From Mobula hypostoma (Eukaryota), in the NCBI RefSeq assembly GCF_963921235.1, contig NC_086110.1, forward strand, positions 13,640,001 to 13,704,000: a DNA stretch of 64,000 nucleotides. Reading direction: 5' to 3'. Within the stretch, counting starts at the first letter, position 1, and the number at the start of each line of letters is the position of its first letter. The notes under the pieces were generated by a model, which saw only the letters and a program-made list of their open reading frames with translations, had not been told where the DNA came from and ran no database searches. Shown here one piece after another: positions 3,643 to 61,805 of the stretch. A program made the translations under genes and the position numbers.

Positions 3643-3774
3643 TCACAGCTTCTTTGATGTATTTACATCTGCGTATAATGTATGTTTGCTTTGATCTTTG
3701 GATGCCGGTGCGTATTTCGAATCGGGAATCTGCAGAGCGACATAAGTCAGTTTGTCAGCTCCACTTCCAGTAGT
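3643..3774 (-). CDS. Terminal cytoplasmic exon: TTGSGADKLTYVALQIPDSKYAPASKDQSKHTLYADVNTSKKL* (ITIM LTYVAL, ITSM TLYADV)
   Basis: Acceptor ttttgcattaatttcacag, phase 0, 44 codons ending TGA; absent from the ORF track because it is short. Confidence 0.8.
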   Translation of the reverse strand, partial: TTGSGADKLTYVALQIPDSKYAPASKDQSKHTLYADVNTSKKL

Positions 3775-4325
3775 CTGTGAAATTAATGCAAAATCAGTGG
3801 TCAGTCGAGCACCTAGTGACTAATTGAATCACACGATTGTAAAATAATTTAGAGATGTACTCATAAGTAATGAACTTTAGGTTGCTTTCACTTTGTATAC
3901 AATTTATGTCAATGTTGTTTCAAGATTTCACTTTATGATTTATATATTAGAGTTTCTTTCCTTACTTAAAAAGAACTTTAACCAAATCAAGTTAGGACAG
4001 CAAAGAAATTCTTGAAGTAGCAGTAATGGTACAAACTAACTGGCTAACTTATAATAACATCGCATATTCTGTCATTTGAGTCTGATTACCGCATCCTGTT
4101 TCATCTCTAGAGATCACAGGTGTTTACTCAGCTACACCTGCCAACGCAGTTCCAAATGCACATGGGCGTTGTCGTCAATGGACAGCGCATAACTGATAGA
4201 ACTGTTATGCAGCTGATAATGGGCGTTGGGATGGACGACATACCCAGTTTCGTGCTATTTGGCGTTTCCTCACGTGAAAATTACATGTGAAATTAAATTC
4301 GTAAAGGAAAGGAAAAAGTAATCTC

Positions 4326-5520
4326 TAGAGATTCTGCAGATGTTGGAAATCTTGAAGACTGCAAACAACATACTGAAGGAAATCATTAGGTAAGACAACA
4401 TGCAAGTAGGTAAATGAACTGCCGGTTGTTTCTGGCAAAGACGCTTTATCGGGATTGGAAAAAAAGGGGCCAGAACCTAGAATATAAACTATGGCGGGGG
4501 TGCGGGAAAAATAGCAGGTGACAGGTGAAACCAGGTAAATGCTAAGGTATGTGCATGATTGGTGAAAGAATGACGTAAGAAGCTGGGAGGTGACGGGTGG
4601 AAAAGGTAAACCGTGTTTAATGGGTTTCTCCTTTATGATACTGTTTAGGCTAATCAAAATGGTTTCTTTGTTATGTTACTGCTGAGAAAGTGCTTCTCTC
4701 TCTCGCAGTTTGTTTGGGTTATAAAGAAAATTGTATTCATTTGCTAACCAATTGGGATATATGCTATTCTTTCTTGTGTGTACGTAAGCTACTGTTTTCG
4801 CGGGCTTTGGGCGAGAATGCGCTGTGGGGACAGAGACAGGAGACGCGATGTTGTAAATTTAGCGGCGGGACGGACCCCGAGTGGGAGTCCGAGGCCCGGG
4901 GTCTTCGGCGAGGAGAGGAGACGAAGACAGACTCGTGTGTAGCGTCTGGTCGCCACCGTGGTTGGTCCCAGGCGGCGGTTCGAGGAGAGGATCGAACGGT
5001 GGAAAGAAGACTACCTTAGCTGAGCTCCAACTGTTGAGCACGAAGTAGTTGAGCTTTGAGAGGTTTGGCGCCTTTTACTTCCATTTTTTTTATTTCTATT
5101 AATTACATAGTTCCAGTAACATCTATAAAGTGTAATCAGTTAATCACATATGGTGTATGGTCTGTTATTTGGCGGGGTGGGGTACATCACACAGCATCCA
5201 CACAAACTAGATTACCCAGCTTGGCGGGGCCGAACACTGCTCCCCCTAGACGAAAGCGAGCTGAGCGAGCCTGAGGCTTAGCAGGAGGCTACACGTGTCT
5301 GAAGGAATCGGATACGGAAGGACTGTGGTCCCTGCAAAGCAAAAGAAGGAGGAGCCCGAGGGTGGGCACAGCCTGATGAGCACATGACGAGAAGAGAAAA
5401 TGTGAAATGCAGAATAAAGGAAAAAGAACGGAATGATAGGGAAATTCCCATAGGTTAGAGAAATCGAAGTTTATGCCTTCAGGTTGGAGTTTCCCGAGAT
5501 GGAAGAAAATATTATGCTTT
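4326..5520 (-). mobile_element. Old Penelope terminal-repeat remnant split by a solo LTR
   Basis: Degenerate match to the Penelope end at 47900-48350 (attctgcagatgttggaaatc; ttagagaaatcgaagtttatgccttcaggttggag). Confidence 0.6.
4616..5293 (+). mobile_element. Solo LTR in the last intron, antisense to the gene
   Basis: 4-bp TSD CGTG (4612-4615 / 5294-5297); ends GCTACA; shares blocks (aaaatggYttctttgttatgtt, tgagctccaactgttgWgcacgaag) with the LTR at 25142-25757. Confidence 0.75.
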
Positions 5521-5731
5521 TACCACAATATTAAATTGTATGAGGAGATAGGCTACTTTTCACTGAAAGGGGATTAGCTATGACGCGTTTTATATTTTGT
5601 TACAGTGTCAGTGGTATGCTTAAGTTTGTAAAATTAACTTCCTCTTGGATGATGATTTTATATATGAACCCTTTGGGGTACTCCGGTTTCCAACCAGATT
5701 CCAAAGACTTAGCGGTTAGGATGTCAATTGA

Positions 5732-5953
5732 TCACATGGGTGTTACTGAGCTGCATGGGCTAATTGTACCGGAAGAGCCTGTAACTGTGCTACATCTCTG
5801 ACGTAAGTCTATATCATAATCATGCTGATCTCCCTGCTTTACCTGGGAATAGATAACGCGCTCCTCCGGTTGTCGATCTTTGCGAAATCGTTTGCTGACG
5901 CTGTGGTTTAGTGAAGCGTAGGCAGTGGTGTGCTCAACCGGTGCTTGTTCAGC
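5732..5953 (-). CDS. Cytoplasmic exon AEQAPVEHTTAYASLNHSVSKRFRKDRQPEERVIYSQ; either splices at 5843 or reads through VKQG...TPM* to 5732
   Basis: Acceptor atatttttttctaacag, phase 0; TAYASL (5926-5909) and VIYSQV (5857-5840); internal donor CAG|GTAAAG at 5843. Confidence 0.85.
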   Translation of the reverse strand, partial: AEQAPVEHTTAYASLNHSVSKRFRKDRQPEERVIYSQVKQGDQHDYDIDLRQRCSTVTGSSGTISPCSSVTPM

Positions 5954-7559
5954 CTGTTAGAAAAAAATATTTAATACAGCTAACTGAGACGGAACTTAGT
6001 GATCATAAACTAAATTAGAGTTGTAAAACCGAGGATAAAAAAATATGTTGGAATAACATTTTGTCTGCGCACAATGATACTGTCCATACATTATACCGGA
6101 GGTGCGATCTCGACCGTTTCAGGCTGGAAATCGCTATGTTTAGATTTTCAGAACACCGCTTATAACAGTCCTAGGGAGAGGATGGTGTTCTCAGTTCTGG
6201 CCATCTCTGTTTTCTTCATCTCCTAAATCCTATCTCTTACATCGCTTTAAATTCTGTGCATGGGCACAGGCCTATCTTGGCACAGGTTCTATCTTTTACG
6301 CATGCGTCGCATTATTGTACTCATTGTCCTAATCAGAATTCGTCTGAAACTCTGACCCTTACCGCTCATATTATTTAAGTTAAGGATATTGGAACAAATG
6401 GCAAGTCCTGATGCTAAGTGTCGCTTAACTCAAGCCCATAACACGGGAGCGGCATCCTGGGCTTCTGTTGATTTCATTGGTTTTCCTGGTAAATCACTTA
6501 AACTGCGATCGAAGTAGGTAGAGCCAATGGACGTAGTCGTTGCAGTAAATGATAAAAATGGTAATTGCTTTGCTGAAATAATGGCATAGCATTCCAGAGT
6601 AATAAAGTAACAGTAAAAATGTAATCATAAATGCTTCAGCTTCAACTTAAATATTACTGTAAGAAGTAGCCCTAAATTTCTGGAAGTTTTACAAACACTG
6701 CTAGAAATTTTAGCGGTATTCTACCATTATGAAATCAGTGATGTGTGCATGACTACCTTATCTTAGCTGCTGCAGTCGCTTCATTTGCACCTGAAGTCTT
6801 TAGGTAAAATTAAAACGAAATTTGTTGAACTGGGGAAAGTGATTAATGAAACACTAGAAGACAAATGTTATCAGGAGAATGAATCCAGGCAGAAAAAAAA
6901 ACATTGAAGTGCGGGAAACATGAAGTAAAACAGAGAAATAGAATACAGAAAATTTTTGTAGATCAGGAAACACCAGTTAAACAGAAATAGTTAACGTTCA
7001 CTTTGCATTCTGCGGTCGTCAATCTAGAGTGTCAACTGGTTCCCTTTCCAAAATCGGTCGGTAGCTACAGATTATTTTCTGCTTTGAATCCAAATGGGAG
7101 AGGACAATACTTTTATCCGTTTTAGGCTTTGCTTCCCAAATTGAGGATGATAATCATTCAGCGTAGCATCGTGAACTAGAAGGTGTCATGTGGGGTTTCG
7201 TTTAACATGCGGTTATCATTGTTCACCACATACTACAAGGTCTTGTTGCAAGTATATTCGATGCCATTGCAGGTTACGCACTGCTGTGCGTATCTTTTTG
7301 CAGATCGGGGTTAAAACTATTTAATATTGCAAGAACCATTTCAATAAAACAAGATTCCGTTACATTTTTACCTTGATGCTGTCCGTCAGTCAAATATAAC
7401 ATACATTACGAATTGATTCGTGCACGTACGGTACTTTCCCATTGTCCAGTCAACTGTGATTCTCGTAAACTAGCATTAAGTAGTTTCTCACACTCTCAGA
7501 TATGTGTTGAATTACTCGTCAAAACAACTTACCTTTCAATGGTAAATATTACCGTTCAC

Positions 7560-7594
7560 CTGGCAATCCAACCGGTTATGAACTGGTCTGGAAC
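7560..7594 (-). CDS. Cytoplasmic mini-exon B: (G)SRPVHNRLDCQ
   Basis: Acceptor cttcctgtaacctttcaag, donor CAG|gtgaac; 35 nt, phase 1 to 0. Confidence 0.65.
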
Positions 7595-7787
7595 CTTGAA
7601 AGGTTACAGGAAGCAGATGCAAGGAGAATATTCAAATAAATCTTGGATGCATACTTGAAAATAAATAATTGACGGGGAAAATTGTTTTATTTTCCCCACC
7701 ACGCTCCAAAGTGTTATGCAATAAAATACATTCATAATATCTTTGCTTTGCAAATATCCCGCTCTGAAACAAGACGAGTCACTTCAC

Positions 7788-7835
7788 CTACCGGGTCTTC
7801 ATTCTGACATCCCTCCAAAGAATTTGTGTTACCCC
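7788..7835 (-). CDS. Cytoplasmic mini-exon A: (G)GNTNSLEGCQNEDPV
   Basis: Acceptor tttgttctcttttctgaag; donors CCG|gtaggt (7792, phase 0) or TAG|gtgaag (7788, phase 1). Confidence 0.6.
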   Translation of the reverse strand, partial: GVTQILWRDVRMKTR

Positions 7836-8476
7836 CTTCAGAAAAGAGAACAAAAATAAATGATTTGCATTGTAAACACTGAACATTATTCATTTGATAC
7901 CAATCGAATTAATACTGTAAGTGGAACTGCTGAAGGTACGGATCTTGCAGAAAATATTTGTTGGTAACAGTCGTGCTAATATACTGTGTTCGCATTAAGT
8001 TGGTGCTAAGCTCAAAAGGCATTGACTTCCAACGAGGTTGTAAAGTTATCATAGCATAACAGCGGCGGTGCTGTATTTAAGTATGGCAAACAAAATGGAA
8101 ATTAAAAGCAATGAGACGTGCATAAGTTGGTCAATGTTCTTTGCACAATCAGAGGGAATTTAGATATACGCCAAGACGTTAATGTTTCAAAATACGGATC
8201 TACCATTGTATGGAAAAGACATTTGAAGAACTCCAAAGGGATATAACGGCATTCATAAATGAGATATGAAATACTTCCAGTGGAATGGTGAAATAGTTAA
8301 ATTTTAAGATCAGGCATGTATTGTGACAGAATATTATCACTGAAATCCGACTTCGAAAATCGTGATCCATGTCCAATCATTCTGTAAATGTCATTTACTG
8401 TTTTGAAGTTAAATAACATCAAAGCTTCTATTTTATACGAATAGAGGTGATGTTTAGAAGCGATCAGTTTCCTTAC

Positions 8477-8575
8477 CGTGTGATCTCTTTAACTTCAGTC
8501 TCAGCGAAAGTATTATCAGAATTAAAATTGCCGATCCGCCCGCTGCACATTCGAGAATCAATATGGTATCAGCGC
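8477..8575 (-). CDS. Transmembrane exon: (G)ADTILILECAAGGSAILILIILSLRLKLKRSH
   Basis: Acceptor ggtttctttttcaag, donor G|gtaagg, 99 nt, phase 1-1; hydrophobic run followed by basic stop-transfer RLKLKR. Confidence 0.88.
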
Positions 8576-9827
8576 CTTGAAAAAGAAACCGTGAACCATT
8601 CATACAACTAAACATAAATCCACACATGACAATCAATAGTGCAAACTATTTTTTAGGCTCCTTTCAAATCTCACCACACAATGATTGGAAAAAACATAGA
8701 ATATACAATATAGAACAAAGATATCCGATTTTTAGTTTCTCCAGACACATACGAGCTATTTTCTGAGACTAAGAATAGGCTCGGCTGCATCTTCCTATAC
8801 TTCTCTTGACAATAGATATCAGCAAAACTATAGAACGTGTAAACATCAAACCAGATACGAATCTGATCTCGATTCAACCGGTTAAATCATGTCTGTCACG
8901 AAGATTCTTTCGTATGATCAAAACCTAAAGGTAACTCGCTGACTCGCCACAGGAGTCCCGGTGCAGCAACAATTCGCTTCCGCATTACATGCTGAAATTA
9001 CTCGTTAACTTCATGAGTTTATAACACTGTACTCTCTAAGTCTCCTGAATGTGCATCGAGCATATTAAACGTATATTCCGACTGTTATGGTTTCCACAGG
9101 TTTAGGAGTGACAAACCCGAGTTCATGGAAAACTGCGTAATGAAAACATAGACCAAACTCGAGTCATCCATTTGAATTGTGTTGCCTACTATTATTGGAA
9201 GGTATTACGCGGAGACTAAATTTTGACAAAGTCTGTCCACAGTTTCGCTCCCTATGCATTCGTGTCAGGTGGCAATTAAGTGTCACGCCTCAGTGTTCAG
9301 GAATTCCTATCTTGATTCAGATTTTGCTCCATCTCCACATTTTTTCCGGTAAAGCTATGTCAATTAAGTACACCTTCGCTCATCAGCAGATGGTTTCCCC
9401 CGTTGTTATATCACCATGAGTTTCAGAGTTTGTTTTACTTTGCCTCATCTTTGACTAATATCCAGAATTTTGTTAGCTTACAAGTACTACACGAATTTAA
9501 TTTCTTAATTCATCCAACACGATTTAAAATGAGGGTATAAGAAATTTGTTTGTAACACCATTCACATTGAATGTTTACTGCAAACAAGTAATCTTAAAAT
9601 TTCGCCCTTCTCTGTTTGGTTAGCTATTCCGCCCCTGTTCTTAACCAGGTTTGATCTACCCACCTGTATCGTTTCAAACTTCTCGGAACGCTAGAGATTC
9701 TGAAAGTGTTGAAAACTCAGAGTAGCACATAAAATACTGAAGGTACGCAGCAGATCAGGAGAGGAATAAAGTAACGACGTTTAGATCCGAGACCTGATGT
9801 CAGGACGCAATCAAGACACCATCTTAC

Positions 9828-10121
9828 CTTGCTCCAGGATGTGGCTGAAACAAGCAGGCACCGTGAGGGAGACATGCAACACCAGACAGATGTAAACATC
9901 TTTTCCCCAAGCAGACTGATTAATTTCCAATAAACTGTAAGCCTCATATAAACCCTCCGCCGTCCGGTTAATATCTGTTTTTATTCCAGTGAGAATTTGC
10001 CTGTTATTTTTTTGCCAGACGATTTGTAATTCCTTCGGGTAGAAGGCAGCTGTTTTACAAAGGAGCTTCCGAGGAGACGAAAACTCTGCAATAGGAACGA
10101 TTTCCAATGGAGTTGGGGGAG
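9828..10121 (-). CDS. Ig C1-set domain exon
   Basis: LLCKTAAFYPKELQIVWQKN...GLYEAYSLLEI...YICLVLHVSL (C-x4-FYP, W, YxC-x3-H); acceptor ctctttttattcaag, donor G|gtaaga; 294 nt, phase 1-1. Confidence 0.92.
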
Positions 10122-10261
10122 CTTGAATAAAAAGAGAGTTATATTGGGTGTTACCATCCATTTAGTTCAAATAAATTCCTTTATCTTCCCGTCAATTACA
10201 ATGACATCTCACTATCAAATTAGTTACCCGCCATAGGTTCACAGCATTTTATAAATTATTT

Positions 10262-10570
10262 TAAGTTCAAGTTCAAGTTCATAGTTAATAAACCACACAG
10301 ATGTACATGGCTAAATGAAACATCCTTCTTTATACTTTATACTATATACTTACATTGTCTTCTGGGGTCAACTGCAAAATGCAGTCCATGTATTCACACA
10401 CAGCACGTGCAGTCACCATCCGGCAGATCCAGTGAAAAATAAACGAAGCAAAATCGAGGCACCGTGCAGAGACAGATGAAAGGAAGAATTCGAAGAAGGC
10501 AGCGAGAAGGCGAATCGAAGGGGTGAAAGGTGAGAAAGACCTTCTGTTTTGAATGGTCTTTCAGCTTTAC
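10262..10570 (-). mobile_element. Non-autonomous SINE-like repeat with (ttgaac)n tail
   Basis: aagttcaagttcaagttc tail and body resembling other copies in the window. Confidence 0.4.
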
Positions 10571-11389
10571 CACATGATTCTCTTTGCGGCAGCGCGTTGG
10601 CTTTGGAAAATATTCCTTTCTGCATTTTTTTTTAGTTCCAATAAAAACTGACCGATAAAACCCAAAATATACAGATGTCCACACTACGAACGCAAGAAGC
10701 TCTTGCAAATTGGTTTAATATTCTGGCGACTCATTTGTTCAGGTAGCTTTTCAGAGCTTACGTTGGAGCTTTCCAGTTATAAACATTCACTGATAGAGTT
10801 TTCCTCGGAATGTATATCATTGCTAGAAAATTTCTCCCGCATCTAATGTGTTGAATTTGGCAAATCATACCCTCCATGAAACAACTAGGAACGGGAAAGC
10901 GGAGATGATGTTAAACGCATTTATTCTACATTTCTATTCTTTCATAAACCTGTCGGCCTGCAGCAAAATGGTCGAAAATGACCTGGCACTGCTATACGAA
11001 CGATGGTGCCCTGCAGAGAGGCAACCGAGGAACTGAACGAACTCCGCTTCTCCCTACAGAGATTTCACTGAAAGATAAGCCCAAAATTCACGATTTTGTA
11101 AACTTGGACCGCTTCCGCTGCAACTATGGTCCGTATCTAACTTAGGAAAGTCTATTTTCAGATTTCTTTATAAATATTTCACAACATTTAGCATTTCACT
11201 CTGCCTACAATGGCCATCCTGAGATCACGGTTGCCCCCACAGCACTGCCATGGACCATATACAGATGGCAGATGTTTATGTGCTTGTTGCCATGAGGCAA
11301 ATTAGTTTGTATAAATCCTCATGGCCCGAGATGGAGTCCCATCCGAAGTCTTGGGAGGCTCGTGCATAATTTGAAGGTGCCTTGATAGA

Positions 11390-11825
11390 GGTATTCAAAA
11401 TATCCTGACCCACGGGTGAGGAGCCGGAGGACTGGATATGACTAATGTTTTTTAGGTGTTCAAGAAAAGTTCTAAGAAGACGCTGGGATCTTTTAGGCTG
11501 GTAAGACTGACGATTGTAAATGATAACTTGTTACAAATATTCCAAGTGACAAGATACATAACTATTTAGATAGAAGGTGGAATAGCCATCAGGATTTTGT
11601 GCATGGTAAGTAGTGTCTGGCTAATCTTGAAGAGCTTATCGAGGAGTTTACCAGAGATCATGTTGAAGGAAATGCAGGGGATGTTGTCTACGTGGCAATC
11701 CCTTAGGCAAAGTCCGTAATGAGAGGCTGATCAAGAAGGTTCGGTTGGCATTCATGATGTAGTAGTAAACTGCATTCAACATTGGCTTGGCGGGAAAGCC
11801 AGGGAGTGGTTGTCGACGGCTGCGG
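11390..11825 (+). mobile_element. Ancient CR1 RT fragment in the V-C1 intron
   Basis: Degenerate match to RT segments of younger CR1 copies (gaggactggatatgactaatgtt; ggatgttgtctacgtgg). Confidence 0.6.
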
Positions 11826-12724
11826 GGATCGGTGCTGGCTACGTTGATACTTCTTAATTAATTTTTTATGACAATGGATTAAACTGATTCAGAATTTTTT
11901 TCAGATCTGCACAGTGGGTAACGAATGCAGACAGCTGTAAAATGGGCTGTAAAATGACAGCTGGAATTCATTCGCTTTCGAATTCCATTCGTGCTCAGCT
12001 CTCTACCCTTTACATTATAACCCTATCAAAATTGATCTCGATATTACGATTACTATTTCTCTCCCTATTTTGAATGGGAAAAGAGGTATAGGTATTCAGA
12101 AATTTTGCAAAGCACATTTGAATTGATAATTTGCAGCGCGTGCGACAAATAGGTGCATTATATTGCTATTAATTCTTTTGGATCTGGGTGAGTTTGTAAC
12201 CTTGACATATCCTATAAGAGAGTTGATAAAATTGTTCATGATTTGTATCCTGTGTGATGGGAAATCGAGCTTTCCAACTACAGCCACTCACATTAGTAAC
12301 AATATTATTTCAACATCTTGCCTGCAAAGCAAACATTACTTCACTTGAAAATTAATTCCTTGTTTTTGAAGCACCTTCTCGATAATAATGCTAAAATCGA
12401 AGGGCATCACTAACGTTGGACATTAGCTTTAAATAGGAGATTGCCGATCGATAGGTCTGCACTGACAGCAGTTGTAAGGAATACGATACAACAAACAGAA
12501 TCAGCGTTATTTCTCGTCCAGCTGACCCTGCCTAAAATGTGATTATTTTATTCTGTTCTTTTTAACTCTACAATTGCAGCTTGTAGAATGGGGTTTCCTT
12601 TGACGAGTGAAACAAATCCACTCTCGCTTTTTGTTTTATCAAATAGTAACATTACATATTAATCTCATCATGAGCTTTAATTTAAATTGCACAAAAGCGA
12701 AAATCTCCTCGCAGCCGCACTAAC

Positions 12725-13030
12725 CGAACACAGTGAGCTTGGAGCCAGTTCCATTCCAGAAAGATTGTTCCCGATACTTTGCTCCACAGTAGTAAATTCC
12801 GGAATCGGCGAATTTCACATCCAGAAGAACAAGCGTTCCTCTTGTCTTTTCGAGACTAAATTGTTTTCTGCTGTCACTTTCTAAAAATGCATTCTCGCCT
12901 TCCCTCCACCAAAGAAAGCTAACAGTATCTTTTGATATTTGAGTATTGCAGTGCAAGGTAACATTCGTCCCGCCCGGAACGTCCAAGTCCGTAGGGAATT
13001 GATATACTCTGAACGCAGGCACTTCGACTA
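12725..13030 (-). CDS. Ig V-set exon with germline-joined J-like G strand
   Basis: VEVPAFRVYQFPTDLDVPGGTNVTLHC...FLWWREG...LVLLDVKFADSGIYYCGAKYREQSFWNGTGSKLTVF; acceptor tttatttttccggcag, donor G|gttagt; 306 nt, phase 1-1. Confidence 0.93.
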
Positions 13031-13239
13031 CTGCCGGAAAAATAAACAAGAGCATTAATAACAGCTACACACAGGGAATAAATAAGAACCTAAAGACGTG
13101 CTGGATATTACTGGATAACAAAGAGACAAAGACGACTGAATTGCTCAACCGCTGAAACTAGGTATGCAGCGCGAACCCAGGTTTAAATTTTTTTAAATAA
13201 AATACTCAGTTCAGAAACGGAACATTTAACTTAGCATAC

Positions 13240-13267
13240 ATAGACAAGTAATAGCCAGGAGCGCCAT
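13240..13267 (-). CDS. Leader exon MALLAITCL
   Basis: ATGG start, donor T|gtatgc (phase 1); joined to the V exon gives a signal-peptide-like MALLAITCLLVEVPA/FRVYQ. Confidence 0.7.
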
Positions 13268-13289
13268 GTACGAAACCGTAAATTTCTCT

Positions 13290-13415
13290 GACATATTACA
13301 GAAACCGAACCGAGCAATTTTGGGATACAAGTGATATTCTGAAGAGTTTGCGGAAGGAATAGAAATTCAAGAGTAAATATATGAACCGTGTAATCATGAC
13401 GTAGGATGACGCCTC
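13290..13415 (-). promoter_or_regulatory. Putative proximal promoter with IRF-, ETS- and CRE-like motifs
   Basis: GAAACCGAAC (13301-13310), GCGGAAGG (~13350), TGACGTA (13397) and TGACGC (13407) just upstream of the ATG; short motifs only. Confidence 0.3.
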
Positions 13416-38107: not shown

Positions 38108-40617
38108 TGTCCTGGTCCGGTCCGTGAAATCCGCATTCCGGTTCACGGTCCGGTTCATCGATCGTTATTCTGGGTTTTCCTATTTCCCTTGTTCCATTGG
38201 GTGCTTTAATTGAGGCCCCTGATTCTCATTTTCGGCTGGCACATAAATACGTCTGCAAACCAAGGATTCCCGACTGGACTGTTCCCTCCCCTTCCCCATC
38301 CAAATCACCGACGGTTACCTCGGCAATTTACTTCGGCAGTTTACCTCGGCAATTTACTTCGGCAGTTTACCTCGGCGGTTAACCACGGCAGTCACCTCGG
38401 CAAGTATCCTGAACAGTCATCCCGGCACTGGGTCCAAGAAAGGATCCTTGCCCCGCGTCGAGAAAGGGTCCCGGCCCTGCGCTCCAAGAAGGGGTCCCGG
38501 CTCCGTCCCCAAGGGCCTAACCAAATCCGGTCCAAGAATCGTGTCAGACCTAGTCCAAAAGCCTTGTCCTGTGCTGGACTTCCTCGTCCTGTGCTGGAGT
38601 TCCTCTTCCTGTTCTGGATGTACCTCGTGTTGTACAAGCCACGTCCAAGTACCTCGTCTAGTCCAAGCCTAGTCCAAGAACCTCGTCCTGTCCAAGTCCC
38701 GGCTTTGTGTTCTCGTCCTATCAATGTGCCTAGTCCTGTGCAGGAGTTCCACGTCCAGTCCTGTAGCCACGTCTTGTCCTCGCCTAGATCCGGGGTCCGA
38801 GCCCGGATCAAGACCCAGGTTTCGAGTCCCTGTCCAGTCTCTGCCTCGGAGTCCTAGCCCAGGCTCCTAGTTCCAAGTTCCTTGTCCTGGTCCCGCTTTC
38901 CTAGTCTTAGTCTTAGCCCAGGCCCGCTGTCCTTATCTCGTCCAGAGCCAGTGCCCATACCGAGCGTCGTTTCCTCCTGACTCCCTTTGCTTTCCTGATA
39001 AACCTTGTCCTGTTCCTAGTACTTCAGTGTCTGTGTCTTGCATTTGGGTCCGTTCCCAACGCCCCCTTATGACAGAACAGCCCAGTCATACATCGAGCCA
39101 GCAACACAGACGCTGTCGTTTAACTCTCGCCATCCTGGGTTCCCTCCTGTTGAATAGCCCGCAACGTGCCCGAGTCATCCTTAGACCTGGAGAGCCTGTT
39201 CGGTCGCCAGGAGGTTCCCATATAGGGGGTGGGGGGTTACTATCATGGTCCGGTCCGTGAAATCCGCTTTCCGATTCACGGTCCGGTAAATCGATCCTTA
39301 TTCCTGGTTTTCCTGATTTCCCTTGTTCCATTGGCTGCCTTAATTGAGGCACCTGATTCTCATTTTGGGCTGCAAATTAAATACCTCTGCAAACCAAGGA
39401 TTTCCGGCTGGACTGTTCCCTTCCTCTCCCCATTCGAATTCCAGACAGTTAGCTCGGCAGTTAACCTCTGCAGTTTTTTGGCAAGTATCCTCAGCAGTCA
39501 TCCAGGCCCTGCGTCCAGGAAAGGGTCCAGGCCCTGCGTCCTAGAGAGGGTCCCGGCCCTGTTAAAGCATTCCGGCCCTGCGTCCTAGAAGGAGTCCCGG
39601 CCGTGCGTCCTAGGAGGGTCCCGGCTCTGCGCTCCAAGAAGGACTCCCAGTTCCGTACCCAAGGGTCTAACCAAGCCGAGTCCAAGAACGAGCAAACCTA
39701 GTCCAAGAGCCACGTACTATGCTGGTGTTCCTCTCCCTGTGTTGGAGTGCCTCGCCCTGGGCTGGAGATCCTCGTCCTGCGCTGGTGTTCGTGGTCCTGC
39801 GCTGGAGTTCCTCGCCCAGCCCAAGAGTACGTCGCCCAGCCCAGGAGTACGTCGCCCAGCCCAGGAGTACCTCGCCCAGCCCGGTGCTGGAGATTCCTCG
39901 TCCTGCGCTGGAGATTCCTCGTCCTGCGCTGGAGTCCCCTCATCCTGCGCTGGAGTCCCCTCGTCCTGCGCTGGAGTCCCCTCGTCCTGCGCTGGAGTTC
40001 CCTCGTCCTGTCCTGGAGTTCCCTCGTCCTGCGGTGGAGTTCCCTCGTCCTGCGGTGGAGTTCCCTTGTCCAGTCCTGGAGTCTGTCGTCCAGTCCAGAA
40101 GTCTCACGTCCAGTCCAGGAGTCCCTAGTACAAGCCATGTGCGAGAACCTCGTCTAGTCCAAGCTACGTCCAAGAACCTCGTTAGTCTAAGCCTAGTCCA
40201 AGAACCTCGTCCTGTCCAAGTCAAGGCTTGGTGTACTCGTCCTGTCCACGTGTCTTGTTCCACAGGAGTTCCACGTTCAGTCCTGTAGCCCAGCCAAGTC
40301 CAGTCCTGTAGCCACGTCTTGTCCTCGCCTAAATCAGGGGTCCGAGCCCGAGTCAAGACCCAGGTTCTGTGTCCCTGTCCAGTCTCTGGCTCGGAGTCCA
40401 AGCCCAGGCTCCTAGTTCCAAGTTTTATATCCTGTTCCCGCTTTCCTAGTCTTAGTCCTAGCCCAGGGCTGGTGTGCCTGTCTCGTCCAGGGCCTGTGTC
40501 CCTGCCCAGTGTCGTTTCTTCCTGACTCCCCTTGCTTTCTTGCTGAACCTTGTCCTGTTCCTAGTAGAGTGTCTGTGTCTTGCATTTCGGTCTGCCATCA
40601 ATGCCCCCCGTATAACA
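38108..40617 (+). mobile_element. Non-autonomous LTR element: LTR 38108-39074, 166-bp internal part, LTR 39241-40617
   Basis: Both LTRs start T(G/A)TC(C/A)TGGTCCGGTCCGTGAAATCCGC and end T(G/A)ACA; purine-rich PPT agggggtgggggg before LTR2; near-TSD gtgtg/ctgtg. Confidence 0.85.
39770..40075 (+). repeat. 21-bp minisatellite (CCTCGTCCTGCGCTGGAGTYC and related) inside LTR2
   Basis: 7-aa periodicity in all frames (e.g. LESPRPA, RRTRELQ). Confidence 0.92.
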
Positions 40618-45890: not shown

Positions 45891-46554
45891 GGTGGGGGGG
45901 GGGCGGATACCGCGAGTGATCTCAATCAAACATGCCAGATAATGAGAAGCCCAAGGAGAGTAGACGTGGAGAGGTGTCTGTTTTCGAGTCCGAGACTAGG
46001 ATCGAAGTTTACAGATGCACATTGAAAGGATATGCGTTGGAATTAGCAAGAATTTCTTCTTGGCAGAGGGTGATGAATCTGTGGAACTTGCTGCCAGAGC
46101 AGGCTGCGGGGGCTAAGTTTTTGGACGTATTTAAGGCAGAGATTGAAATGTTCTTGACTGGTAATGCATTTAAAGGTTACGAGTAGAAGACGGGAGAACA
46201 GGATTGAAAAATATCAGACTGAATTCAACGGCAGAGCAGAATGGATGAGCTAAGTTTCCTCACCTGTTCTCATAATATTATGGTCATTGCAGAACTTAAA
46301 CTTGCTCATGACAGGTCTTTGACGGAATTATAGTGAGGCGTAAAGAATTTGTTGGATCAATAGTCAACGACCAGAATTTTGTTATCTATTTGTAGATTGC
46401 CCAAAATAGAATGCAACCAAAATGAATCACTTCTTTTTCCTTTCGTATTTCAGCATTGCTGTCCTTAAAGGCAGTTAAACTAATCAGACTCAAAAGCTTT
46501 CACGTATTGCTACAAATGGAATCTATTTATCAGTTCAATTACTATTTATTTATT

Positions 46555-48350
46555 TTGGATGTCCAGTCCCTATATACTTCCATCCCCCATCAGGAACGTC
46601 TGAAAGCTCTGCGCTTCTCTTTGGATTCCAGACCTAATCAGTTCCCCTCTACAACCACTCTGCTCTGTCTAGCGGAATTAGTCCTTAGTCTTAATAATTT
46701 CTCCTTTGGCTCCTCCCACTTCCTCCAAACTAAAGGTGTAGCTATGGGCACCCGTATGGGTCCTAGATATGCCTGCCTATTTGTCGGGTTTGTGGAACAA
46801 TCTATGTTCCGTGCCTATTCTGGTATCTGTCCCCCACTTTTCCTTCGCTACATCGACGACTGCATTTGCGCTGCTTCCTGCACGCATGCAGAGCTCGTTG
46901 ACTTTATTAACTTTGCCTCCAACTTTCACCCTGCCCTCAAGTTTACCTGGTCCATTTCCGACACCTCTCTCCCCTTTCTAGATCTTTCTGTCTCTGTCTA
47001 TGGAGACAGCTTATCCACTGATGTCTACTATAAGCCTACTGACTCCCACAGCTATCTGGACTATTCCTCTTCTCACCCTGTCTCCCGCAAAAATGCCATC
47101 CCCTTCTCGCAATTCCTCCGTCTCTGCCGCATCTGCTCTCAGGATGAGGCTTTTCATTCTAGGATGAGGGAGCTGTCCTCCTTTTTTAAAGAAAGGGGCT
47201 TCCCTTCCTGCACTATCAACTCTGCTCTTAAACGCATCTCCCCCATTTCACGTACATCTGCTCTCACTCCATCCTCCCGCCACCCCACTAGGAATAGGGC
47301 TCCCCTGGTCCTCACCTACCACCCCACCAACCTCTGGATCCAACATATTATTCTCCGTAACTTCCGCCACCTCCAATGGGATCCCACCACTAAGCACATC
47401 TTTCCCTCCCCCGCTCTCTCTGCCTTCTGCAGGGATCGCTCCCTACGCGATCCCCTTGTCCATTCGTCCCCCTCCCCCCCATCCCTCCCCACTGATCTCC
47501 CTCCTGGCACTTATCCGTGTAAGCGGAACAAGTGCTACACATGCCCTTACACTGCCTCCCTTACCACCATTCAGGGCCCCAAACAGTCCTTCCAGGTGAG
47601 GCAACACTTCACCTGTGGGTCGGTTGGGGTGATATACTGCGTCCGGTGCTCCCGATGTGGCCTTTTATATATTGGCGAGACCCGACGCAGACTGGGAGAC
47701 CACATTGCTGAACACCTACGCTCTGTCTTCCAGAGAAAGCAGGATCTCCCAATGGCTACGCATTTTAATTCCACATCCCATTCCCATTCTGACATGTCTA
47801 TCCACGGTCTCCTCCACTGTAAAGATAAAGCCACACTCAGGTTGGAGGAACAACACCTTATATTCCGTCTGGGTAGCCTCCAGCCTGATGGCATGAACAT
47901 CGACTTCTCTAACTTCCGCTAATGCCCCACCTCCCCCTCGTACGCCATCTGTTACTTATTTTTATACACACATTCTTTCTCTCACTCTGCTTTTTCTCCC
48001 TCTGTCCCTCTGAATATACCCCTTGCCCATCCTCTGGGTCCCCCCCCCCCCCGCGTCTTTCTTCCCGGACATCCTGTCCCATGATCCTCTCGTATCCTTT
48101 TGCCAATCACCTGTCCAGCTCTTGGCTCCATCCCTCCCCCTCCTGTCTTCTCCTATCATTTTCGATCTCCCCCTTCCCCTCCAACTTGCAAATCTCTTAC
48201 TCACTCTTCCTTCAGTTGGTCCTGACGAAGGGTTTCGGTCTGAAACGTCGACTGCACCTCTTCCTAGAGATACTGCCTGGCCTGCTGCGTTCACCAGCAA
48301 CTTTGATGTGTGTTGCTTGAATTTCCAGCATCTGCAGAATTCCTGTTGTT
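46555..48350 (+). mobile_element. Penelope-like element, 5'-truncated, with open RT + GIY-YIG frame to the stop at 47922
   Basis: DVQSLYTSIPH, KGVAMGTRMGP, RYIDD, GVIYCVRCSRCGLLYIGETRRRLGDHIAEH; terminal repeat to ~48350. Confidence 0.95.
48218..48253 (+). ncRNA. Minimal type I hammerhead ribozyme motif in the Penelope terminal repeat
   Basis: GGTC-CTGACGA-AGG(gtttcgg)TCT-GAAA-C-GTC^-GACT. Confidence 0.7.
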
Positions 48351-55800: not shown

Positions 55801-56532
55801 TAACCCAAGCCTCGAAGATACCGCAGTCAAGCTCCAAGAACGCAAGCCTCGAAGATCCCGGAGCCAAGCTCCAAGAACGCAAGCCTCCAGCATCCCGCAG
55901 CCAAGGTCCGAAGAACCCAAGCCTCCAGGATCCCGCAGTCAAGCTCCAGGAACACTAGCCTCGAGGATCCCAAGCCAAGCTCCAAGAACACTAGCCTCGA
56001 GGATCCCAAGCCAAGCTCCAAGAACACTAGCCTCGAGGATCCCAAGCCAAGCTCCAAGAGCACTCGCCTCGTTGATCCCAAGCCAAGCTCCAAGAACACA
56101 ATCCTCGACGATCCCAAGCCAAGCTTCAAGAACATAAGCCTGAAGTCCCCAGCCTGCAGCCAAGCTCAAGACCCAAGACCCCAGCATCAAGCCTCAAGAG
56201 CAAAGACCCCAGCCTGTCTCCATCTCAGGCCTCTAGACCCCAGCCAACGTCCTGTCCTGAAGGCATGTCATGTCTTTGCCTGGTTCTGGGGTCCGAGCCT
56301 GAGGCAAGACCCAGGTTCTGGGTCCTTGCCCAGGTTCGGGCTCGGAATCGAAGCCTTGTCTCCTAGTCCCTGGTTTCTCGTCCTGGCCCTGCTTTCCCGA
56401 GCCCAAATCTGCATTCTTGTCCCTGCTCCCTGTCTGTATCCTGTCACGTCCCTACTCTAGTCAAGTCCTGTTCCTTGTACTTCATTGTCTGTGTCTCGCA
56501 TTTGGGATCGTTCACAGCACCCTAGTGTGACA
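55801..56532 (+). mobile_element. 5'-truncated LTR of the same family with a 36-bp minisatellite
   Basis: (GATCCCAAGCCAAGCTCCAAGAACACTAGCCTCGAG)n at ~55805-56130; ends gtgtctcgcatttgggatc...TGTGACA. Confidence 0.8.
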
Positions 56533-57399: not shown

Positions 57400-60300
57400 A
57401 ACAAAGGTTTAAAAAGAGAAATTTTCAACGGTCCTTGTTTCAGTCGAAGCAAGCAGCTGAGAAAAAGAGAGTGAAAAAATCGGGTACAAAGAGTCTTTTT
57501 TTTAAACACTGCTCGGGGAGAAGGGTCTGCACTGCGTAGGCGCGTGACGTAGCGCGCCAAGTTTTAAAAAGAGAAATTTTCAACGGTTGTTGTTTCAGTC
57601 GAAGTAAGTAGCTGAGAAAAAAGGAGTGGAGAAATCGGGTACAAAAAGTATTTTTTTAAAAACACTGCTCGGGGAGAATGGTCTGCACTGCGCAGGGCGT
57701 GACGTAACGCGCCAAGGTTTGAAAACAGACCACCATATACAGCGGGCAGCATTGTGAGCGGGCAGCGGAGTAAGAGAGAGCAGAGTGGGGCGGCTTTGGC
57801 TCAGCAGGCTTCGGCGAGAACAGGTAGAGGCCAGGGTAGGTTCCGGTAAGTTTTTTTTTGTCCAGAGTAGAGAGAATGCGAGGCAGGGTGTTAGAATGCT
57901 CCTCTTGCAGGATGTGGGAGGTCATGGAGCCCTCCGGTGTCCCTGACAACTACACCTGCAAGAAGTGCATGCAGATGCAGCTGCTAACAAACCGCTTTAG
58001 GGAACTGGAGCAGGAACTGGATGACCTCCGGATCATTCGGGAGAATGAGGAGATTATATATAGTAGCTACAGGAAGGTAGTTACACCAAAGGAGCAGACC
58101 ACAGGAAATTGTGTCACTTTCAGGCTAGGGAAGAGGAAGGGGCAGGAAGAGTACGGTTCCCCTGTGGCCATTCCCCTCAACAACAAGTATACCGAATTGG
58201 ATACTGTTCAGGGGCGGGGGGTGGGACGACTTACCTGGGACAAGCTGCAGCAGCCAGATCTCTGGCACTGAACCTGGTTCTGCAGTGCAGAAGGGAGGGT
58301 GGATAAAGAGGAGAGCAGTAGTGATAGGGGACTCAATAGTTAGAGGTACAGATAGGAGGTTCTGTGGTTGTGACAGGGAATCCAGGATGGTTTGTTACCT
58401 CCCGGGTGCCAGGGTCAAGGATGTCTCTGATCGATTGCATGACCTTCTGAAGTGGGAGTGTGATCAGCCCGATGTCGTGGTGCACATCGGTACCAATGAC
58501 ATAGCAAGGAAGAGTGAGGAGGTCCTGGAGAGTGAGTATAGAGCTTGGCAGGAAGTTGAAAAGCAGGACCTCGAGGGTGGTAATCTCAGGATTGCTACCT
58601 GTGCTACGTGCCAGTGAGGGTAGGAATAGGATGCTCTGGAGGATGAACAAGTAGCTGAGGAACTGGTGTAGGGGGCAGGGTTTCAGATTTCAGGAACATT
58701 GGGACCTCCTCTGGGGCAGATGGGACTTGTACAAGAGAGACGGGTTACACTTGAACTACAAGGGAACCAATATCCTTTCAGGGAGGTTTGTTAGTGCTAT
58801 TGGGGAGGCTTTAAATTAGATTTGCAGGGGGATGGGAACCAAAGTGCCAGAGCTGACAGTGGGACGGGTGTGAAAATAAATGATGTTAAATGTTCAAGCA
58901 AAGCCGCTAATAGAAAGGTTGTGAGTGGTGGTAAAAATATTCTGAGGTGTATATATTTCGAAGCTAGGAGTATTGCCGGGAAGGCAAACGAGTTGAGGGT
59001 GTGGATTGACACGTGGAATTATGATGTTATAGCAACTAGTGAAGCTTGGCTACAGGAGGGACAGGACTGGCAGCTTAATATTCCAGGGTTCCGATGTTTC
59101 ATATGTGATAGAGGCAGAGGAATGAAAAGTAGGGGGGGGTGTAGAATTGCTTGTCAGGGAAAATGTTCAGGCAGGACAGATTAGAGGATTGTCAACTGAG
59201 TCCTTATGGGTGGAGCTGAGAAAAAGGAAAGGTATGGCCACATTAGTGGGGTTGTATTATAGACCACCCAATAGTCAGCGAGATATGGAGGAGCAAATCT
59301 GCAGAGAGATAGCTGGCACTTGTAGGAAACATGAAGTTGTGGTGTTAGGGGATTTTAATTTTCTACATATTGATTGGGACTCCTATACAGTTAGGGGTCT
59401 AGATGGGTTAGAGTTTGTAAAATCTGTTCAGGAAAGTTTTCGAAATCTATATATAGAGGTACCAACTAGAGGGGATGCAATATTAGGTCTCCTGTTAGGA
59501 AACGAATGAGGGCAAGTGACAGAAGTCTGTGTAGTGGAGCACTTTGTTTCCAGTGATCAAAACACCATTAGTTTCAACTTGATCATGGATAAAGATAAAT
59601 TTGGTCCTAGGGTTGAGGTTCTAAACTAGAAGAAGGAGAAATTTGAAGAAATGGGAAAGGATCTGAAAAGCGTGGATTGGGACAGGTTGTTCTCTGGCAA
59701 GGATGCGATCGGTAAGTGAAAAGCCTTCAAAGGAGACATTTTGAGAGTGCAGAGCTTTCATGTTCCTGTCAGGATTAAAGGCAAAGTGAATAGGAATAAG
59801 GAGCCTTGGTTCTCAAGGGATATTGCAACTCTGATAAAGAAGAAGAGAGAGTTGTATGACATGTATAGGAAACAGGGAGCAAATAAGCTGCTTGAGTAGT
59901 ATAAAAAGTGTAACAAAATACTTAAGAAGGAAATCAGAGGGCCGAAAGAAGACATAAGGTTGCCTTGGCAGTCAAAGTGAAGGATAGTCCAAAGACCTTT
60001 TACGGGTATATTAACAGTAACAGTAAGGGCTAAAATTGGTCCTCTTGAAATCAGTGATCGGCTGTGGGTGGAACCAAAAGAAATGGGGGAGATCTTAAAT
60101 GGGTGTTTTGCGTCTGTATTTACTAAGGAAACTGGCATGAAGTCTATGGAATTAACGGAAACAAGTACTGAGATCATGGAAACTGTACAGATTGAAAAGG
60201 ATGAGGAGCTTGCTATCTTGAGGCAAATTAAAGTGGATAAATCCCCAACACCTGACAGGGTATTCCCTCGGACCTTGAAGGAGACTAGTGCTGAGATTGT

Positions 60301-61805
60301 AGGGGCCCTGGCAGATATATTTAAAAAGTCAGTGTCTACAGGTAAGGTGCCGGAGGATTGGAGAATGGCTCATGTTCTTCCGTTGTTTAAAAAAGGATCG
60401 AAAAGTAATCCGGGAAATTATAGGCCGGTAAATTTGATGTAAGTAGTGGGTAAGTAACTGGAGGGAGTACTAAGAGACAGAATTTACAAGCATTTGGATA
60501 GACGGGGACTTATTAGGGAGAGTCAACGTGGCTTTGTGCGTGGTAGGTGATGTTTAAACAATCTATTGGAGTTTTTCGAGGAGGTTACCAGGAAAGTAGA
60601 TGAAAGGAAGGCAGTGAATGTTGTCTACATGGACTTCAGTAAGGCCTTTGACAAGGTCCCGCATGGGAAGTTGGTTAGGAAAATTTAGTCGGAAGGTATA
60701 CATGGAGAAGTGGTAAATTTGATTAGAAATTGGCTCAATGGAAGAAGCCAAAGAGTGGTAGTAGAGGATTGCTTCTCCGAGTGGAGGGCTGTGACTAGTG
60801 GTGTGCCACAGGGATCAGTGCTGGGTCCGGTATTATTTGTCATCTATGTCAATGATTTGGATGATAATGTAGTAAATTGGATCAGCAAATTTGCTGATGA
60901 CATACAGATTGGAGGTGTAGTGAACAATGAGAAAGGATTTCAAAGCTTGCAGAGGGATTTGGAAGATCTGGAAAAACGGGCTGAAAAATGGCAGATGGAG
61001 TTTAATACAGACAAGTGTGAGGTATTGCACTTTGGAAAGACAAACCAAGGTAAAACATACAGGGTGAACGGTAAGGCACTGAGGAGTGCAGTAGAACAGA
61101 GGGATCTGGGAATACAGATGCAACATTCCCTAAAAGTGGCGTCACAGGTAGATAGGGTCATAAAGAGAGCTTTTGGTACATTGGCCTTTATTAATCGAAG
61201 TATTGAGTATAAGAGCTGGAATGTTATGATGAGGTTGTATAAGGCATTGGTGAGGCCGAATCTGGAGTATTGTGTTCAGTTTTGGTCACCAAATTACAGG
61301 AAGGATATAAATAAGGTTGAAAGAGTGCAGAGAAGGTTTACAAGGATGTTGCAGGGACTTGAGAAACTCAGTTACAGAGAAATGTTGAATAGGTTAGGAC
61401 TTTATTCCCTGGAGCGTAGAAGAATGAGGGGAGATTTGATAGAGGTATATCAAATTATGATGGGTATAGATGGAGTGAATGAAAGCAGGCTTTTTCCACT
61501 GAGGCAAGGGGAGAAAAAGAGGACTTGGGTTAAGGGTTGGCGGGGGAGTTTAAAGGAAACATTAGGGGGCGGCTTCTTCACACAGAGAGTGGTGGGAGTG
61601 TGGAATGAGCTGCCAGACGAGGTGGTAAATGCTGGTTCTTCTTTAACATTTAAAAATAAATTGGACAGATACACGGATGGGAGGTGTATGGAGGGATATG
61701 GTCCATGTGCAGTGCAGTGGGACTAGGCAGAATATGGTTCGGCACAGCCAAGAAGGGCCAAAAGGCCTGTTTCTGTGCTGTAGTTTTTCTATGGTTTTCT
61801 ATGTT
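57400..61805 (+). mobile_element. Full-length degenerate CR1 (5' monomers, ORF1 Zn finger + SGNH esterase, ORF2 EN + RT, tail)
   Basis: CSSCRMWE...CKKC; VIGDSIVRG...HIGTNDI; ORF 60710-61726 (GVPQGSVLGP, KFADD); (tttctatg)n tail. Confidence 0.96.
57406..57725 (+). repeat. Two 155-bp tandem monomers at the CR1 5' end
   Basis: aaaaagagaaattttcaacgg at 57411 and 57566. Confidence 0.9.

Follow-up and report, generated by a model that had tools for sequence, protein, structure and literature searches.

The locus and its gene model

The stretch of Mobula hypostoma DNA analysed here, 64,000 nucleotides of contig NC_086110.1 (RefSeq assembly GCF_963921235.1, positions 13,640,001 to 13,704,000), is referred to below as the window, and positions are counted from its first letter. 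It contains a gene for a cell-surface receptor, a type I membrane protein with one V-set and one C1-set immunoglobulin (Ig) domain, which is probably a SIRP-like inhibitory receptor. The gene lies on the minus strand from 13294 to 3643 and has seven coding exons, which form an uninterrupted open reading frame (ORF) of 1041 nt encoding 346 amino acids (aa). The start ATG is at 13294, with an alternative second ATG at 13267, and the stop codon TGA occupies 3645-3643. Each intron has GT-AG ends, and the reading frame is kept across every exon join. The encoded protein starts with a leader and a V domain whose J-like strand is fused to it in the germline; a single C1-set domain and a transmembrane helix follow, and the cytoplasmic tail bears four tyrosine motifs. 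A sequence-only reading of the same DNA had proposed this layout, and the in-frame GT-AG model, together with Pfam matches to V-set and C1-set, bears it out. The same reading had counted eight exons, of which only seven were found: a tblastn search with eight proteins of the family described below added none, and neither this search nor reading of the sequence revealed an eighth coding exon or a second C1 exon in the window. The boundaries of exons 1-4 are all phase 1, the usual pattern in genes of the Ig superfamily. The 5' untranslated region extends to at least 13331, as seen in an RNA contig from run X2 that covers 13331-13240 and is spliced to the V exon. The features of the gene are as follows.

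13240-13294, minus strand: coding exon 1, holding the start codon (13294-13292) and the larger part of the signal peptide; phase 1 end, donor CTAT/GTATGC
12725-13030, minus strand: coding exon 2, V-set domain plus germline-fused J-like G strand (..YYCGAKYREQSFWNGTGSKLTVF), phase 1-1
9828-10121, minus strand: coding exon 3, one C1-set Ig domain (PPTPLEI..LLCKTAAFYP..YICLVLHVSL), with an extra Cys (..PACFSH) near its end
8477-8575, minus strand: coding exon 4, short stalk, transmembrane helix (TILILECAAGGSAILILIILSL, which contains Glu) and basic stop-transfer stretch; homologous to the paralogues
7792-7835, minus strand: coding exon 5, 44 nt, phase 1 to 0, GNTNSLEGCQNEDP; donor CCG/GTAGGT; colinear with P0158 and P0005; without RNA contig
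7733-7791, minus strand: read-through of the exon-5 donor, the RefSeq form; tail without tyrosine motifs; absent from the RNA contigs
5843-5953, minus strand: coding exon 6, 37 codons, with the first tyrosine pair, TAYASL (Y278) and VIYSQ/T (Y301)
3643-3774, minus strand: coding exon 7, with the second tyrosine pair, LTYVAL (Y314, an immunoreceptor tyrosine-based inhibitory motif, ITIM) and TLYADV (Y337, an immunoreceptor tyrosine-based switch motif, ITSM), then TGA

A query with the C1 exon returned a 100% identical RefSeq protein of M. hypostoma, the 285-aa P0001, named "natural cytotoxicity triggering receptor 3 ligand 1-like". P0001 agrees with the 346-aa model over the transmembrane exon and exon 5; it does not use the exon-5 donor but continues into the intron, where it ends at a stop at 7735-7733 (..ICKAKIL). 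The RefSeq gene span of 5563 nt is consistent with this read-through end. The gene has thus already been predicted, though under a wrong name and with a 3' end that is probably mis-modelled.

Transcription and splicing

The splice junctions were examined in RNA contigs from two M. hypostoma runs, X1 and X2, that cross introns. Four of the six junctions are present in these contigs: 13240/13030, 12725/10121, 9828/8575 and 5843/3774. The first two are joined in a single 652-nt contig from X2, which has about eight differences from the window and therefore represents an allele or a copy that arose very recently. A contig of 306 nt from X1 stops matching at 9828, and its next 11 bases are the exact start of the transmembrane exon. 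A further contig from X1, 256 nt long and with zero mismatches, covers 5954-5843, splices 5843/3774 (CT..AC, which is GT..AG on the minus strand) and runs to 3631, 12 nt beyond the stop codon. It should be noted that intronic contigs of comparably low depth occur in the RNA libraries, which indicates that the libraries contain pre-mRNA or DNA; the evidence for splicing is thus provided by the joints and not by depth.

Against these contigs, the leader-V, V-C1, C1-transmembrane and exon 6-exon 7 junctions of the sequence-only model hold. For the transmembrane-exon 5 and exon 5-exon 6 joins the basis is twofold: the splice signals are strong, and the exons are colinear with P0158, an annotated protein of Hypanus, as well as with P0005 and P0157, paralogues from the same genome. 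The receptor locus is a real, transcribed and functional seven-exon gene.

An alternative is that the main product is the tail-less 285-aa form, so that this copy would be a non-signalling or decoy copy, or would signal through a charged transmembrane residue rather than through ITIMs. The RefSeq model P0001 has this form, the exon 5-6 link is absent from the RNA contigs, and this copy carries a Glu in the transmembrane helix and an extra membrane-proximal Cys. However, exons 6 and 7 are spliced in RNA with zero mismatch to the locus, and the exon-5 donor is strong. The models of the orthologue P0158 and of the paralogues P0005 and P0157 show these 5-6-7 joins as well, and both exons 6 and 7 have kept open frames and intact motifs. 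With these observations on the other side, we consider a tail-less main product quite improbable.

A germline-joined V-J domain and one C1 domain

Exon 2 encodes a V-set domain (Pfam, E 1.4e-9) and exon 3 a C1-set domain (Pfam, E 1.4e-10, 41.8 bits against a cut-off of 21). The V exon ends with a J-like strand, ..NGTGSKLTVF, and the same exon closes with a splice donor; the complementary DNA (cDNA) is colinear with the genome across this strand. No pair resembling recombination signal sequences (RSS) was found between 9500 and 13400 when a heptamer of at least 6/7 and a nonamer of at least 6/9 were required at a spacing of 12/23 ± 1. The fused V-J exon is kept in all relatives. The VJ unit is joined in the germline and needs no DNA rearrangement, and the proposal of a germline-encoded, non-rearranging VJ-C1 receptor stands, with V and J in one exon, contiguous in cDNA and without RSS.

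C1-set domains are almost confined to antigen receptors, molecules of the major histocompatibility complex (MHC) and their helpers. Strong PDB matches for the V and C1 domains are found among T-cell receptor (TCR) chains and Ig light chains, and for the C1 exon the top sequence matches in the PDB include UrIg2 (9dmx). The E-values of whole-chain PDB profiles are inflated by multi-domain chains and are unfit for ranking families; per-domain scores and trees were used instead. The AlphaFold2 (AF2) model of the ectodomain shows two beta-sandwich domains with a mean predicted local distance difference test (pLDDT) value of 87.3.

The RefSeq names of the gene and of several paralogues would make the product a B7-family ligand, similar to NCR3LG1 (B7-H6) or PD-L1, or a protein related to tapasin. 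In Foldseek searches the E-values for PD-L1, B7-H6, CD276 and TAPBPR are similar to those for SIRP, with TM scores of 0.63-0.71. Several features stand in contrast to these names. The match to C2-set_3, the butyrophilin/B7-type domain, reaches only 20 bits, below its cut-off of 27, whereas C1-set scores well above its own. A J-like GxGxxLxV strand is present in the V domain and ITIM/ITSM motifs in the tail, and neither feature defines the B7 family. For tapasin and TAPBPR, the large N-terminal domain is missing and the V domain follows directly after a leader of 18-23 residues. The names themselves are automatic best hits and not assignments, because close paralogues receive six different ones. 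A B7 or tapasin identity is therefore given hardly any credence.

An N-glycosylation sequon (NGT in GNGTGS) in the J-like strand, at about 12740-12760 of the window, is conserved family-wide. It lies on the G-strand bulge through which V domains pair with each other in antibodies and TCRs.

Transmembrane helix and cytoplasmic tail

The four tail motifs, TAYASL, VIYSQT, LTYVAL and TLYADV, have their tyrosines at a spacing of 23/13/23. LTYVAL is a canonical ITIM and TLYADV a canonical ITSM; TAYASL is ITIM/ITSM-like, and VIYSQT is degenerate at the +3 position. Read-through at the 5843 donor would yield VIYSQV, but the RNA shows the spliced form instead. Pfam returned nothing specific for the tail exons of the receptor gene, and weak matches to SIT were seen only for two other tails, those of Rhea SIRP alpha and of Callorhinchus P0180.

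The transmembrane helix of this copy bears a Glu (ILILECAAGG) four residues before GG. The same column is occupied by Arg in P0162 and by Ala in P0005. The extra, unpaired Cys at the end of the C1 domain (PACFSH versus PASFSY; 9828-9870 in the window) is common to the closest orthologues only. It is also observed that other ITIM-bearing members, P0152 and P0168, have an Asp in the transmembrane helix.

At the loose end at 9828, an X2 transcript has a near-identical 3' end of the C1 exon (2 mismatches in 48 nt) and a different start of the transmembrane exon (GADLRLI..), which resembles the M. birostris orthologue P0151. The transcript comes either from a close paralogue or from an allele that has a different membrane module. 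Together with the transmembrane Glu and the extra Cys, it suggests, at the level of sequence, that a near-identical ectodomain is carried on differing membrane and tail modules, an arrangement classic for paired receptors.

A multigene family of cartilaginous fishes

The RefSeq protein as a query gave 30 matches and a 17-member alignment gave 50, all of them in Chondrichthyes and many of them named SIRP-alpha- or SIRP-beta-like. In total, 84 of the collected proteins score at least 75 bits on a C1 profile of the family. Members occur in rays (Mobula, Hypanus, Hemitrygon, Pristis, Amblyraja, Leucoraja and Narcine), in sharks (Heterodontus, Scyliorhinus, Heptranchias, Mustelus, Chiloscyllium and Hemiscyllium) and in a chimaera (Callorhinchus). 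Their RefSeq names include SIRP-alpha-like, SIRP-beta-1-like, NCR3LG1-like, PD-L1-like, tapasin-related-like, TCR-beta-like, Ig-lambda-like and MHC-II-like. Judged by their sequences, these differing automatic names cover one single family. The sequence-only reading could not place the receptor in a named family, a statement that no longer applies: the gene is a member of a multigene family found across the Chondrichthyes, with clear orthologues and with RefSeq names that are mostly SIRP-alpha/beta-like, and its closest named relatives are the SIRPs according to trees, superposition, tail and language model, as detailed below.

The usual layout across members is leader-V-C1-transmembrane, and many members have long tails with the same four-tyrosine pattern. 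In other members the tail is short and the first third of the transmembrane helix contains an Arg; these include P0162, P0159, P0071, P0173/4, P0170, P0172 and P0187. Such a mixture, with long ITIM tails in some members and short tails plus a transmembrane Arg in others, is characteristic of paired inhibitory and activating receptors. The 80.6-Mb Mobula chromosome that carries the receptor gene holds at least seven members, among them P0162. The Callorhinchus members are flanked only by further family genes. Among paralogues the V domain diverges more than the C1 domain, with identities to P0005 of 56% and 72%, respectively.

In P0179 (Chiloscyllium), P0024 (Amblyraja) and P0178 (Callorhinchus) there are two near-identical C1 copies, or a V-C1-V-C1 arrangement. 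These proteins were considered as candidates for a SIRP-type three-domain form, which was rejected, since near-identical copies point to a recent exon duplication or to merged gene models. In bony vertebrates, the protein searches with the family recovered no protein of the single-C1 layout.

The Glu of the present receptor sits in the column that holds Arg in short-tailed paralogues of the same chromosome, and an unpaired Cys lies just outside the membrane. From these two features one could envisage a charge-matched, disulfide-linked heterodimer of two germline VJ-C1 chains, similar to a TCR but made without RAG, and the family might be the closest living form to the V-C1-transmembrane ancestor of SIRPs and rearranging receptors. 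We mention this as a speculative proposal with little chance of being correct.

Relation to SIRPs

The link between this family and the SIRPs was approached from several directions. An exhaustive HMMER search with the C1 exon placed coelacanth and lungfish SIRP-like proteins within the best 150 of 1.84 billion representatives, and the coelacanth protein as a query led to bird SIRP alpha and mammalian SIRP beta-1. A word-indexed protein search with the family never returned bony-vertebrate SIRPs directly; they were reached through the exhaustive HMMER search and the coelacanth protein. In a C1 tree of 73 domains, the family (100/99) falls inside a clade with SIRP domains 2 and 3 (d2 and d3) at 93/91, with Ig light-chain (IgL), Ig heavy-chain (IgH), MHC-I/CD1 and UrIg2-like domains separate. 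The V+C1 tree joins the family to SIRPs at 95/85 (starred), and the V tree is in weak agreement with this grouping.

The AF2 ectodomain is best superposed as a whole on SIRP beta-1 and on d1-d2 of SIRP alpha, with TM scores of 0.75-0.76 and a root-mean-square deviation of about 4 Å, compared to TM scores of 0.40-0.46 for TCR beta and light chains. This evidence is soft, as the inter-domain angle is itself predicted. Among language-model clusters, the nearest named ones for a full-length paralogue are SIRP alpha, at 0.97 and 0.96. BLASTP with the full model aligns C1-transmembrane-tail colinearly with d3-transmembrane-tail of Rhea SIRP alpha (E 1e-12). Four tyrosines are present in each of the two tails, spaced 23/13/23 here and 24/17/26 in Rhea SIRP alpha, and in a shark family tail 14 of 28 positions agree with the SIRP alpha unit YA-LD..LSKA-K-P..EE..YA.

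Further features by which SIRPs are recognised recur in this family. An N-terminal V-set domain has its J-like strand within the V exon and undergoes no rearrangement, as seen from Pfam, cDNA and the RSS search. The tail is of the SIRP alpha type at the sequence level, with four tyrosines in two ITIM pairs. P0162 and others provide paired members with a basic transmembrane residue and a short tail.

A number of observations weigh against a SIRP-like assignment. The norm of the family is V-C1 and not the V-C1-C1 of SIRPs, with their two C1 domains. The V exon alone resembles a generic antigen-receptor V: its top full-length PDB matches are CD79b (E 7.6e-8) and TCR alpha, and the nearest atlas cluster is a "putative antigen receptor". 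The per-domain profile scores of the family C1 are all 40-50 bits, whether against SIRP d2/d3, Ig lambda C, MHC-I alpha-3 or UrIg2-like domains. Approximately unbiased (AU) tests do not reject trees in which the family is joined to IgL, MHC-I or UrIg-like domains (p 0.11-0.30). The reference sampling of the trees is limited, and TCR C, tapasin, TAPBPR, NKp30, CD79 and MHC-II references are not included. The tail alignments are weak, with E-values of 8e-4 to 0.07 for a single comparison, and ITIM tails are known to arise convergently. Finally, exons 4, 5 and 6, which connect the ectodomain to the tail, are not joined by an RNA contig in the two runs, either over exons 4-5 or over the exon 5-6 link.

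Several of these observations would also fit if the family were an independent non-rearranging VJ-C1 lineage, a direct relic from before RAG that is no closer to SIRPs than to TCR, Ig or UrIg, with an ITIM tail gained by convergence or exon shuffling. V-C1-transmembrane is the exact layout of a TCR or IgL-type chain, the V exon by itself is nearest to antigen-receptor V domains and CD79b, the C1 profile scores fail to separate SIRP from Ig, MHC and UrIg2, the AU tests leave alternatives open, and a single-C1 counterpart in bony vertebrates was not recovered. On the other hand, the best C1 and V+C1 trees join the family to SIRPs, the whole protein is colinear with SIRP alpha through the transmembrane helix and tail, the tyrosine spacing is matching, and both the language-model and the structural rankings favour SIRP. 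We regard an independent relic lineage as unlikely.

We propose that the gene encodes a SIRP-like inhibitory V-C1 receptor, a member of a paired-receptor family whose nearest named relatives are SIRP alpha and SIRP beta, and we consider this reading probable. That the family and the SIRPs share a specific common ancestor is likely as well, at odds that fall well short of certainty; orthology to SIRP is putative. The receptor is named SIRP-like and not SIRP because of the AU tests, the limited reference sets of the trees and the single C1 domain.

A possible mode of signalling

A mode of action can be outlined from sequence, from analogy with SIRP alpha (PMC2785349) and from established knowledge of ITIM receptors. 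As in SIRP alpha, the V domain may bind a cell-surface ligand through loops similar to complementarity-determining regions, with the C1 domain serving as a stalk. After ligand engagement, Src-family kinases would phosphorylate the tail tyrosines. The pairs Y278/Y301 and Y314/Y337, each about 23 residues apart, could then dock SHP-1 or SHP-2 through their tandem SH2 domains; the docked phosphatase would damp activation of the expressing cell, putatively a leukocyte.

The rest of the window

Aside from the receptor gene, the ORFs of the window are transposon ORFs only. No further cellular gene is evident from 14000 to 64000, where reverse-transcriptase or LINE-like ORF fragments occur on both strands, for instance at 46456-47922 (488 aa) and 60710-61726 (338 aa). 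As the remaining ORFs are only transposon-like, the receptor genes of the cluster are separated by tens of kilobases of transposon debris.

Intron 6 contains, at 4288-5391, a GC-richer interspersed repeat with many short RNA contigs. Its word depth is very high in all three runs, with values of up to about 3000, and the repeat family is abundantly transcribed. Rfam gave zero matches in the window, including this repeat. Tandem repeats are located as follows.

39721-40082: minisatellite, 21-bp unit, about 16 copies, in a GC-rich stretch at 38-40 kb
55802-56141: tandem repeat, 36-bp unit, 9 copies
57404-57729: tandem repeat, 155-bp unit, 2 copies

The 21-bp and 36-bp arrays produce long spurious ORFs with repetitive peptides.

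Comparison with known systems and implications

SIRP alpha (SHPS-1) and SIRP beta share with the present receptor a germline VJ-type V domain, C1-set domains, a single transmembrane helix and four tyrosines in two similarly spaced pairs. They likewise form a family with inhibitory members and short-tailed members that have a basic transmembrane residue. The differences are two C1 domains in SIRPs versus one here, an ectodomain identity of about 25%, and the Glu in the transmembrane helix and extra Cys after the C1 domain that are present here.

UrIg and UrIg2 are non-rearranging VJ-C1 genes of sharks (PMC12227049, PMC10751288). Like the receptor gene, they belong to cartilaginous fishes, encode V and J in a single exon and have C1-set domains after it. 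However, they have three to eleven C domains and form Fc-like dimers without an ITIM tail (PMC12227049, PMC10751288), in contrast to the one C1 domain and the ITIM tail of the present receptor, and UrIg-like multi-C1 proteins fall on the opposite side from the receptor family in trees.

TCR chains and Ig light chains have the same V(J)-C1 order, followed in TCR chains by a transmembrane segment as well. The receptor gene differs from them in having no separate V and J segments and no RSS, in its inhibitory tail, and in an elbow geometry that is predicted to be different, as the low TM scores of the model against these chains suggest. NKp30 (NCR3), chicken PRARP and CD79b are alike in their germline VJ-type V domain, but each has a lone V without C1, and NKp30 signals through a charged transmembrane residue and CD79b through an immunoreceptor tyrosine-based activation motif (ITAM).

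The idea that a V-C1 receptor of the SIRP type is a relic of an antigen-receptor precursor has already been published for SIRP alpha (Hatherley 2009, PMC2785349). Non-rearranging VJ-C1 genes are also a recognised class, comprising SIRP, UrIg, UrIg2 and several tetrapod genes (PMC10751288, PMC12227049). In the part of the literature that was covered, no description of a chondrichthyan single-C1 paired-receptor family was found. What is new is thus the single-C1 layout and a family for which we found no description; it is not a new kind of receptor.

For the annotation of M. hypostoma, the analysis corrects RefSeq, in which a 285-aa "NCR3LG1-like" protein is annotated without the signalling tail whose exons 6 and 7 are spliced in RNA. 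For the biology of cartilaginous fishes, it describes what is probably a SIRP-like family of the oldest jawed vertebrates, in which V(J)-C1-transmembrane chains, laid out like one TCR or light chain, occur in inhibitory and putatively activating forms and in clustered expansions. With these genes, the role of non-rearranging V-C1 receptors can be studied in concrete terms, be it in the time before RAG-based immunity or alongside it.

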